Shown piece after piece: positions 43,588 to 45,535 of a stretch of 64,000 nucleotides of DNA. The number at the start of each line of letters is the position of its first letter. Within the stretch, counting starts at the first letter, position 1. The notes under the pieces were generated by a model that worked only from the letters and a program-made list of their open reading frames with translations, had not been told where the DNA came from and searched no databases. Location: sequence record MG592456.1; one strand, given 5' to 3'. The translations under genes were made by a program, and so were the position numbers.

Positions 43588-43600
43588 ATGGGGTGATTAA

Positions 43601-44140
43601 ATGGCGTTTATTAGTAAAGAAATCGAAACAAAGAACATGACTGAAAAAGACATGCAATACGCAATCGCCGTACAGAGCGTGTGGATCAACAAGCGATACA
43701 GTGCAATCATACCAAACTGTTACACTCAATACGACAATGAAGCCGACTTATTTGCAATTCGCCCAAGTGGGCTGTGTGACGAGATAGAAATCAAGGTATC
43801 GAAAGCAGATTATCGAGTTGACGAGCAGAAATCGGTCAAAGTCATCAATGAGAACTCAAAATCACGTCGATATCCATACACAGACGTTCCTAAACGCTCT
43901 GCATTGCAAGATGGTAAGATGACGAACTACTTCTGGTATGCGTTTCCGAAAGGGCTTGTAGACCACGCTGACGTCCCAGAGTGGGCTGGTATCATTGAAG
44001 TGGATGGGTACTTGAACGCAAGGGAAGTCAGAATGCCCAAACGACTACATGGTGGTAAGATGACTGCTGAAGAGCAGATCAAGCAGATCAAGAAGCTCGG
44101 CTATCGATTCTGGAACTTATTAACAAAGGTACGAGCATAA
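43601..44140 (+). CDS. MmcB-like PD-(D/E)XK nuclease
   Basis: EADLFAI..G..EIEIKVSKADY, NYFWYAFP, VPEWAGII. Confidence 0.7.
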   Translation: MAFISKEIETKNMTEKDMQYAIAVQSVWINKRYSAIIPNCYTQYDNEADLFAIRPSGLCDEIEIKVSKADYRVDEQKSVKVINENSKSRRYPYTDVPKRSALQDGKMTNYFWYAFPKGLVDHADVPEWAGIIEVDGYLNAREVRMPKRLHGGKMTAEEQIKQIKKLGYRFWNLLTKVRA

Positions 44141-44227
44141 TGACTAAAGAACAAGAAGATTTCTTGCGGCTCATGAATAAAATGCAAGAGTACCGAGATA
44201 TCGCAAAAACATTGGTTTAAAATGATG

Positions 44228-44257
44228 AAAAGGGTTGACATTAGTCAGCCCTTTTTT
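44228..44257 (+). terminator. Intrinsic terminator
   Basis: AAAAGGGTTGAC-ATTA-GTCAGCCC-T6-GTGTCTG. Confidence 0.85.
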
Positions 44258-44303
44258 GTGTCTGGAGGAAAATCAAGCGAAGCGGCAGGATCTGTCTGTG
44301 GCG

Positions 44304-44370
44304 GAAAAATTCCGTCTCATCTTAGTAGAATTAGTGATTTTAATGGTATTAGAGAAATTAGAAATATTAG
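44304..44370. repeat. TTAG 9-nt-period array, copy 2
   Basis: Leader GAAAAATTCCGTCTCATCTTAGTA; TTAG at 44322, 44331, (TTAA 44340), 44349, 44358, 44367. Confidence 0.85.
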
Positions 44371-44386
44371 AGAAAATGATTTTTTG

Positions 44387-44415
44387 TTGACTTGTGATTG
44401 ATTGTCGTTTATCAT
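44387..44415 (+). promoter_or_regulatory. sigma70 early promoter
   Basis: TTGACT-17-TATCAT. Confidence 0.8.
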
Positions 44416-44444
44416 CTGTCACGTTAACTCAATAAGGAATAGAC

Positions 44445-44972
44445 ATGAGTAGTATTAAACAACTTGAAATTGAACTAGCTGATATGCATATGGAGTCGGT
44501 AGATGACTATGATTGTGCCGTAACCGTATCTTGTAAAGGTATGAGCCGAACATACACAGTCGACGTACTATCCTTTGAACAGTTCATCAACTTGAACGAT
44601 GATGCTGAGTATTGTGCTTTTGAATGGCATGGTATTCATGAGTCGTTGCATGATGAAGAGCTTGATTTCCGCGCAATCAACGAATGGGCATCACTTGACG
44701 ACGACGAACGCGAAGTCGTTGAAGCACTGATGGATCATAACGTCTGTATGAGTGTTGAAGATGCAGTCGAGAAGATGTCTGATGTTCAGTTGTTCACTGG
44801 CTCGAAAGAAGCATATGCTCAAGATCAGTTTGAAACTAGTGGTATCCTCATAGCCGACCTGCCGTATATGGTCAGACATAACATCGACTGGGATGCGGTA
44901 TACGACGACTTAGAAGCTAGCGAACACATCATTGAACTTGCGAATAACCGTCGACTAACGGTGATTGGATGA
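44445..44972 (+). CDS. ardA: ArdA-like antirestriction (acidic DNA mimic) protein
   Basis: Very acidic; EWHG, INEW..LDDDERE.VEAL, LP..V..NIDWDAV..DL resembles ArdA C-terminus. Confidence 0.6.
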   Translation: MSSIKQLEIELADMHMESVDDYDCAVTVSCKGMSRTYTVDVLSFEQFINLNDDAEYCAFEWHGIHESLHDEELDFRAINEWASLDDDEREVVEALMDHNVCMSVEDAVEKMSDVQLFTGSKEAYAQDQFETSGILIADLPYMVRHNIDWDAVYDDLEASEHIIELANNRRLTVIG

Positions 44973-45535
44973 GTAGTACAAATCAAACAGTCAACAAAGA
45001 CGACTATTACGCAACACCAACATGGATCGTAGAAGAGTTTTTCGAGCGGTTCGTTCGCGAGTACTCATTAAACATCAGCAATATGAACATACTTGACCCA
45101 TCAAGTGGTGGTTGTGCTAATCATGCAGCGGCTTATCCTATTGTACTTAAAGAGTCTTATGGTGTTAGTGCAGCAACAATGGACATAAGGGAAGATAGTC
45201 ACGCTCAAGTAATAGCTGATTATCTTCAAACACCCGTTGCCATCAACTATTACGACATGATTGTGACTAATCCGCCATTCAGCTTATCAGTTGACTTCGC
45301 GACTAAAGCAATCAATGAAGTGAAAGACGACGGGTATGTGGTCATGCTACAGCGCTTGAATTGGCTAGGTACTCAGAAACGCAAACCGTTCTGGGACGCA
45401 ATGCCACTGAAATCAGTGATGGTTCACCACAAGCGACCGTCATTTCATGGCACAAAGGGCACAGACTCGATAGAGTATGCGCATTTCGTATTCCAAAAGG
45501 GATACGCAGGTACAGCAGAGATTGTGATTATATGA
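44969..45535 (+). CDS. N6-adenine DNA methyltransferase-like protein
   Basis: DDYYATP, ILDPSSG, IVTNPPF, TDSIEYAHF. Confidence 0.8.
   Translation: MSSTNQTVNKDDYYATPTWIVEEFFERFVREYSLNISNMNILDPSSGGCANHAAAYPIVLKESYGVSAATMDIREDSHAQVIADYLQTPVAINYYDMIVTNPPFSLSVDFATKAINEVKDDGYVVMLQRLNWLGTQKRKPFWDAMPLKSVMVHHKRPSFHGTKGTDSIEYAHFVFQKGYAGTAEIVII

Follow-up and report, generated by a model that had tools for sequence, protein, structure and literature searches.

A hairpin and 9-nt repeat element dispersed in the genomes of KVP40-like vibriophages, a putative nucleoprotein assembly site

What is the role of a run of TTAG tetranucleotides, set one to every nine nucleotides, in the gap between two genes of a large lytic phage? 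The run lies at 44322–44375 on the plus strand of a 64,000-nt stretch (the window) of MG592456.1, the 239,318-bp record of Vibrio phage 1.081.O._10N.286.52.C2 (1.081.O), a KVP40-like T4-type phage (Straboviridae, Schizotequatrovirus); window coordinates are record coordinates minus 62,000. A preliminary description, made from the letters of the window alone, listed it as the second of two such arrays (copies 1 and 2). Comparison of related genomes shows that, on sequence criteria, it belongs to a cis element some 120 nt long that is specific to one strand, under selection and conserved in KVP40-like vibriophages. The element is probably a site at which a nucleoprotein complex assembles, with nucleation on a structured segment followed by side-by-side binding of some six protomers (or three dimers) of a single protein that recognises its sequence.

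A six-locus element around the 44322 array

The array is exactly as it was first described, with TTAG at 44322, 44331, 44349, 44358 and 44367 and TTAA at 44340, and it is entered from a 24-nt leader, GAAAAATTCCGTCTCATCTTAGTA, at 44304–44327. When up to three mismatches are allowed, the leader occurs at two sites in the window, 44304 and 1964–1987, the latter with three mismatches (the 21 of 24 matches to copy 1 that had been reported), and shuffled sequences are expected to yield 0.01. The pattern TTAG-N5-TTAG-N5-TTAG occurs six times against an expectation of 0.01, always within the two arrays and always on the plus strand, in keeping with the common orientation claimed for them. In random 64-kb sequences of the array's composition, five of six units in register were never seen, the maximum being two to three, with four in one of 200 runs; and among the periods 5 to 14 tried on the real window, only period 9 gives runs. 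The objection anticipated for this array, that similar 9-nt TTAG registers could arise as often in shuffled AT-rich sequence, therefore falls away. An origin by chance in AT-rich low-complexity DNA, for which only the AT richness of phage intergenic DNA speaks, has next to no probability, refuted as it is by the shuffles, the composition-matched simulations and the conservation of the element in 51 phage records. The array is also the least stable 54-bp duplex of the window (44322–44375; rank 1 of 63,947, 3.7 standard deviations below the mean), and that of copy 1 ranks 178 of 63,947.

A profile built from copies of the element and run over ten whole phage records defines a sharply separated family, with matches of 47–80 bits and a next best match of 14 bits. 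Copies beyond the window, which the preliminary description had left to be counted, bring the total for 1.081.O to seven; F86 has five, and KVP40, nt-1, D480, VH7D, K566, VS2, QD01 and phi-Grn1 have six each. BLAST finds the element at 291 places in 51 phage records; every one is from a Vibrio phage, evidently a member of the KVP40-like group. There are six syntenic loci, located upstream of nrdH, of an operon with ArdA-like and Dam genes (the dam locus, with the 44322 copy), of the lipoprotein gene KVP40.0252, of gene 1, of wac and of uvsY. The flanking genes are on the element's strand, on both sides, at all six. Gene 1 (coding for a deoxynucleoside monophosphate kinase) follows gp3, wac follows gp12 and uvsY follows gp35, these three loci being at the ends of late clusters. 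The seventh copy in 1.081.O is a tandem duplicate at gene 1 (record 207131–207362, minus strand), in which the copies are 164 nt apart; this is the sole locus, and 1.081.O the sole phage, in which we have seen a duplicate. The gaps between loci are 26–64 kb in genomes of 239–255 kb and are more even than random placement predicts (P of 0.004–0.009 for the minimum gap and 0.003–0.008 for the standard deviation); as the loci are syntenic, this spacing is a single evolutionary observation and should not be counted seven times.

The functional unit extends beyond what was first noted, adding a GCGAAGC motif and a hairpin conserved in structure. In the alignment of copies the order is, often, GCGAAGC, then a short hairpin, a TCATC linker and contiguous 9-nt units. 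At the 44322 copy, all on the plus strand, the heptamer is at 44277–44283, the hairpin (GGCGGAA-AAA-TTCCGTC, with seven pairs including one G.T/G.U and a 3-nt loop) at 44300–44316, the linker at 44317–44321 and the six contiguous units at 44322–44375; the hairpin consists of the first 13 nt of the 24-nt leader and the 4 nt that precede it. In 33 of 60 copies GCGAAGC precedes the first TTAG by 40–47 nt and the hairpin by about 20 nt; as DNA, d(GCGAAGC) folds into a mini-hairpin of unusual stability. Metagenomic copies carry an extra GTGCC-GAA-GGCAC hairpin beside it. The linker, (T/A)TCATC, is invariant, and the distance from hairpin to array is fixed in all copies. The 351 units of the 60 copies have the consensus TTAG-T-R-R-W-W (by position: T, T, A with C in 17 units, G, T>A>G, purine in 97%, R>T, T>A, A>T) and are nearly devoid of C on this strand (C 1.8% vs G 23.5%). 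Six units is the modal number (44 of the 60 copies), 13 copies having five; the 9-nt register has no frame break throughout, and the number of units differs between close relatives by whole 9-nt steps. Folded as RNA, the array has essentially no structure (−4.5 kcal/mol, z −1).

The hairpin has the consensus GGCGGAA-AAA-TTCCGYC in the copy alignments. Its seven pairs are formed in 84% of the cells of a 30-copy alignment, as against 34–54% when the 3' partner is slid, and RNAalifold returns the identical helix. A compensatory change from CGG/CCG to CCC/GGG keeps the pairing, giving GGCCCAA-AAA-TTGGGCC, which VH7D and phi-Grn1 have at both the gene 1 and the dam loci and KVP40 has at the gene 1 locus; genomes with this variant retain CGG/CCG at their other copies. 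A further variant in F86, GCTCGA/TTGGGC, pairs using two wobbles, and at one pair G.T alternates with G-C (14 vs 11 copies), with T.G in three copies. One-sided changes are mostly such G.T/G.U wobbles, which pair on the top strand only, and the folded strand is therefore the sense strand, as RNA or as single-stranded DNA. The support for selection on a structure, with pairing and not sequence conserved, is real but modest, the independent events being few and the stem of one metagenomic copy being broken.

Neither a protein-coding repeat (Leu-x-x in the TTA frame) nor a micro-ORF accounts for the array, and both were rejected because no reading frame persists from copy to copy or from phage to phage: indels put the copies out of frame with one another, the stretch that is open in KVP40 and nt-1 is interrupted by in-frame stops in D480, and there is no conserved start codon. 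Small ORFs overlie the leader in some copies, and coding sequences are annotated over the non-coding element in D480 (VPHD480_0302, L015:1521-1610) and in 6E35.1a (MYOV011v1_p0233, L214:311-430). The C-terminus of KVP40.0251 (L012:1097-1516), …EKSEAE, enters the GCGAAGCG part, such that its last residues are dictated by the element. We also considered the leader as a MotA-type promoter, its box preceding TAGAAT or TAGTAT of unit 1 by about 12 bp; a −10-like hexamer is generic to all units, and the supposed box coincides with the hairpin, the sequence of which co-varies. The covariance models of Rfam 15 give no family at the element at four loci, with E values up to 1.

Spread, concerted evolution and genetic context

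When the region 43600–45000, which matches 1.081.O at 100%, is compared by megablast, only 44276–44375 still matches KVP40, nt-1 and most relatives (82–87%, at 2–5 places per record), the upstream gene matching one lineage only, at 78%, and the downstream gene none. This non-coding stretch is therefore better conserved than the genes around it, and the leader is more conserved across genera than the coding DNA alongside. A leader-anchored scan of IMG/VR finds copies only in KVP40 and VH7D themselves, and no family member is present in 185,579 bacterial and archaeal species represented by one genome each. Metagenomes contribute six true copies on six marine contigs, two of them identical in sequence. 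Among uncultured relatives there is a further type of locus in which the array abuts an ATG (L338:3615-3680, L315:1509-1574, L318:770-835 and L324:4591-4657). A generic scan of IMG/VR for TTAG arrays of 9-nt period yields only perfect tandem or coding repeats, mostly in giant-virus bins, and is uninformative. An unrelated metagenomic contig (L361:13436-13479, with the same sequence at L310:1198-1241) has TCATC and a short TTAG array with no hairpin; the first 27 nt of this array equal the KVP40-type consensus, and it lies 1.2 kb downstream of a gene for a Rep_3-family initiator (Pfam E value 1e-22). This likeness could be a chance similarity in AT-rich DNA.

The copies resemble their genome-mates more than their orthologues. 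The genomes of K566 and D480 are 97–98% identical, and 99–100% identical in the 250 nt either side of each locus, and in K566 units 2–4 are replaced by one identical patch, TTAGTGATC TTCGAGATA TTCGAGATA, at five of the six loci. The patch turns TTAG into TTCG and introduces GATC, and at the gene 1 locus of K566 the hairpin variant is changed too. On these comparisons the dispersed copies undergo gene conversion; for a lytic phage, this is a clear example of scattered cis elements evolving in concert. The homogenisation of the copies is possibly driven by selection to match one trans factor. The small terminase gp16 was considered as the co-varying factor and rejected, as D480 and K566 have identical versions of it; the other ORFs that differ between these two phages (tail fibres, the region of the CCA-adding enzyme, ORFans) are too numerous to point to any one. 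The preliminary description had argued, from the different spacers of copies 1 and 2, for maintained function and not a recent duplication. The conclusion stands, on the comparison between genomes; the argument from the spacers is weak, because homogenisation within the genome leaves the other five copies near-identical to copy 2, and copy 1, at the nrdH locus, is the outlier among the copies in 1.081.O.

The 44322 copy is placed, as originally noted, between a terminator (a hairpin and T tract at 44227–44258, plus strand) and an early-type promoter (TTGACT-17-TATCAT at 44387–44415, plus strand), a sigma-70-type sequence found by promoter scan and serving the downstream operon. A canonical intrinsic terminator is located upstream in 40 of the 60 copies; it is absent from the lipoprotein locus and from the dam locus of KVP40 and nt-1, where the upstream ORF ends just before the hairpin. 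T4-type early promoters are found downstream at five of the six loci, with −35 sequences GTTTAC, GTTTAA or TTGACA at 0 to about 45 bp past the last unit, and the array abuts the −35 at the nrdH and uvsY loci. At wac a late TATAAATA follows the element, and at the gene 1 copy of 1.081.O the downstream promoter is Mot-box-like in appearance. The lipoprotein locus has no promoter; there unit 5 (TTAGGAGTA) is a Shine-Dalgarno sequence, and in most of the phages examined the start codon falls within unit 6. With the context varying and the element constant, the element is a module in its own right, tied to no single promoter class.

What may act at the element

The unbroken register, the modal six units, the position-specific unit sequences and the fixed hairpin-to-array distance are the grounds on which we regard the element as a putative assembly site. 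As to its role, we advance tentatively, as a best guess that is itself less likely than not, that it is a directional, origin-like hot-spot of replication initiation and recombination acting at the level of DNA; that the six homologous and evenly spaced sites, each with a hairpin and 9-nt iterons, would be sequence-defined sites of initiation or of primosome loading, read by a phage factor, is possible if doubtful. In this scheme the AT-rich array would melt most easily, the top (non-template), C-poor strand would be exposed as a single strand and fold the hairpin, an initiator or primosome-loading factor would assemble on the repeats, and forks would leave co-directionally with transcription by RNA polymerase; frequent initiation and repair at these sites would then cause the copies to homogenise one another. 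We entertain an origin because of the even spacing, the easy melting, the intergenic position of the sites largely outside the main transcripts, the homogenisation and the copy upstream of uvsY. T4 origins are recombination hot-spots, and in T4 the annotated oriF sits at the 5' end of uvsY and fires in the direction of that gene; one copy of the element is located just upstream of the uvsY promoter.

T4 has at least five early origins, spread round the genome and mostly in late-gene regions, of which oriF and oriG, R-loop origins with a middle promoter, require an AT-rich unwinding element (PMC3016281). The element is reminiscent of these two in its AT-rich, easily melted segment of about 50 bp, in its directionality and co-orientation with genes, in the several sites round the genome, and in the site upstream of uvsY that oriF and one copy have in common. 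In T4, in contrast, a promoter fires into the unwinding element, and the origins share no motif (PMC3016281), whereas the six element sites are homologous. The T4 oriF/uvsY leader (L366:15330-15390, minus strand) is nearly G-free and has CCAATAACAA twice in tandem, another short periodic tract in a T4-type leader. Tandem direct repeats beside a hairpin and an AT-rich region, with repeat variants common to all copies in a genome, also recall the iteron origins of plasmids (Rep_3/pi) and the Rep origins of circoviruses, geminiviruses and parvoviruses. The element differs from them in its contiguous 9-bp units, as compared to iterons of 17–22 bp in helical phase or Rep repeats of 4–6 nt, and in being present as six copies in one genome. 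The hairpin and repeats of an HUH Rep origin are there, but the loop is just AAA and no nonamer is conserved.

A number of observations weigh against an origin. The interval from the terminator to the array has no visible sigma-70, Mot-box or late promoter, and the recognisable promoter lies downstream of the array and points away from it; the sites would have a shared motif that T4 origins lack; and contiguous 9-bp repeats are atypical for iterons. An initiator, which iteron origins of the Rep_3 and lambda O type have encoded nearby, was seen neither in the genes next to the six loci nor in the QD01 annotation over its first 50 kb, this being the part of the proteome covered, and initiator-plus-iteron origins are not known from T4-type phages. 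Two loci are inside operons without a terminator. Units 5 and 6 at the lipoprotein locus supply a Shine-Dalgarno sequence and a start codon, which fits an RNA operator better, and the top-strand wobbles and the absence of C suit RNA as well as single-stranded DNA. One metagenomic copy (L324) has a broken hairpin with two stem mismatches, and the spacing statistic is essentially a single evolutionary sample. The 'iterons' of T4 oriE do not serve as a precedent and were set aside, being 12 nt long at an exact 24-nt spacing inside gene 5. That region (record ~79.4–79.6 kb, L247:6403-6570) looks like the imprint of a coding repeat and not like a protein-binding array.

An assembly could instead take place on RNA or on duplex DNA. 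As an RNA-level platform, which we consider somewhat unlikely, the hairpin, carried on read-through or polycistronic transcripts, would nucleate the cooperative loading of an oligomeric RNA-binding protein onto six UUAG units, with control of translation or RNA stability, or marking for RNase E-type processing beside a protective stem-loop, as the outcome. Such a platform would agree with the constant placement of the element on the sense strand, with hairpin changes that are compensatory or G.U wobbles valid on that strand only, with the C-poor and unstructured array, with the inclusion of the element within mRNA where the terminator is lacking (the lipoprotein locus and the dam locus of KVP40 and nt-1), with the translation start signals within the lipoprotein-locus array and the metagenomic arrays that abut an ATG, and with the many unit junctions that, read by eye, resemble the RAUUW / RN-WUU preference of RNase E. 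It also has parallels in the targets of TRAP (11 (G/U)AG repeats) and HutP (UAG repeats) and in the T4 gene 32 operator (a structured element with a periodic AU-rich tract), all of which resemble the element in having regular UAG units on unstructured C-poor RNA beside a structured nucleation element; at one locus, moreover, the tract ends at a Shine-Dalgarno sequence and an AUG. (In the gene 32 leader of QD01, L245:1150-1200, ATAC recurs at a spacing of about 10 nt.) But the element is spaced at 9 nt and not at 5–7 nt, its UAG recurs every 9 nt and not as triplets 2–4 nt apart, and the array is in a leader at only one or two of the six loci; no TRAP or HutP homologue turned up, no search being aimed at them. 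Furthermore, 40 of the 60 copies directly follow a strong intrinsic terminator and five of the six loci precede the promoter of the next gene, so that there the main transcripts of both sides would not contain the element; no promoter of its own was found for it, Rfam has no match, and even genome spacing has no rationale at the RNA level. An operator or roadblock on DNA is unlikely in our view. A phage or host DNA-binding protein would coat the six tandem 9-bp sites and either shut off the adjacent early promoter or form a polar barrier that insulates it from read-through. The short distance from array to promoter, the orientation fixed relative to transcription, the contiguous repeats in strict register, and the genome-specific variants common to all copies, as expected for matching one trans factor, are all consistent with this. 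Precedents are provided by ribbon-helix-helix proteins on omega heptads and MetJ boxes and by the stoperators of mycobacteriophages, where contiguous short direct repeats are found upstream of promoters or dispersed sites are intergenic and in one orientation; the element differs in its 9-bp units, its attached conserved hairpin and its restriction to only six sites, each an array. An operator would leave unexplained both the even spacing and a hairpin conserved in its pairing, which occurs in both CGG/CCG and CCC/GGG forms within one genome; the array is not at a constant distance from the promoter, which one locus lacks altogether, the promoters downstream are of different classes (early-type, Mot-box-like and late TATAAATA), and no candidate regulator was found.

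The setting of the 44322 copy raises a different explanation, that the array is mere AT-rich filler of a promoter-early stem-loop (PeSL) cassette, kept similar by gene conversion and acting as a homology patch for modular recombination. PeSL cassettes of T4-type phages, including nt-1 and KVP40, are intergenic and repeated within a genome, are recombination substrates, and are characterized in the text and figure legends of two papers by an A3-4G3-loop-C3T3-4 terminator stem-loop, an AT-rich stretch and a sigma-70-like promoter, TTGYVH-N17-TAWWAT (Arbiol et al. 2010, PMC2839356; Comeau et al. 2014, PMC4122927). The 44322 copy has the corresponding parts in its 13-bp terminator hairpin with T tract, its array and its TTGACT-17-TATCAT promoter, and the evident gene conversion, the different phylogenetic affinities of the genes on either side, and the tandem duplicate at gene 1 in 1.081.O also suit such filler. 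A homology patch, nevertheless, needs no 9-nt register, no invariant TTAG and TCATC and no compensatory hairpin changes, and its leader would hardly be better conserved between genera than adjacent coding DNA; and while the same text and legends tie PeSLs to variable genes and hyperplastic regions and give no second hairpin, TCATC linker or 9-nt TTAG register, the element occupies exactly six fixed syntenic loci in ten genomes, several of them beside core genes (uvsY, gene 1, wac), and occurs also without a terminator (two loci) or a promoter (one locus). We conclude that the element sits inside a PeSL-type cassette but is not simply a PeSL, and mere filler is very unlikely. Slightly less probable still is a site of packaging initiation or nicking, either a pac-like array wrapped by a ring of small terminase or a hairpin-plus-repeat site for a nickase. 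The regions that terminases and Rep/nickases recognise typically have short direct repeats close to a structured site, and the directionality, even spacing and recombination-driven homogenisation would fit. Against this, gp16 is identical in D480 and K566 despite their differing arrays, packaging in T4-type phages is regarded as sequence-independent headful packaging, and the hairpin loop has no conserved nick motif; no HUH-type gene turned up, none having been specifically searched for.

In architecture the element is a new variation on familiar types of cis element (platforms of the iteron, operator or repeat-RNA sort), here set within a PeSL cassette. Searching the literature for names and for exact sequence strings brought up only the two PeSL papers and nothing on the array, and the element is apparently undescribed in the literature and databases searched. 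No large lytic phages have been better studied than the T4-type phages, but the ways in which relatives of T4 choose origins, insulate transcription units and regulate genes post-transcriptionally are largely unexplained. The abstract of the KVP40 genome paper reportedly identifies no early- or middle-mode control features. A six-site element whose hairpin is conserved in structure and whose repeat is locked in register provides a tangible, readily mutated way into one of these questions, and natural bait for the protein that reads it. Were the sites origins, they would represent a new form of origin specification in T4-type phages, unlike the motif-less, initiator-free origins of T4. The element also shows that a separate functional module is concealed in the 'AT-rich region' of some PeSL cassettes.

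Neighbouring genes and copy 1

The terminator-like hairpin at 44227–44258, identified by RNA folding and from the sequence, has a 13-bp stem and an AUUA loop and closes the upstream unit, which includes an ORF at 43601–44140 and a 26-aa ORF. A simple terminator scan overlooked it, probably because the A/T ends of the stem consume the T tail. The ORF at 43601–44140 has a weak MmcB-like match; the 26-codon ORF (44140–44220, plus strand) is unannotated, overlaps the upstream stop codon (TAATG) and ends just before the terminator. Downstream of the promoter are NVP1081O_148 (44445–44972, plus strand), with a weak match to the antirestriction protein ArdA that is below threshold (E value 2e-4, 22.5 bits against a 27-bit cut-off), and a gene for a Dam-like methyltransferase (44969–45535); together these look like an early anti-restriction operon. 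Copy 1, all on the plus strand, is also preceded by a terminator hairpin (1930–1951). Its leader (1956–1981) is a divergent variant of the nrdH locus with a CGGT...ACCG stem followed by TCTCACT, and its array (1982–2044) has seven 9-nt TTAG units that run straight into the −35 region of the promoter of the nrdH-like gene.

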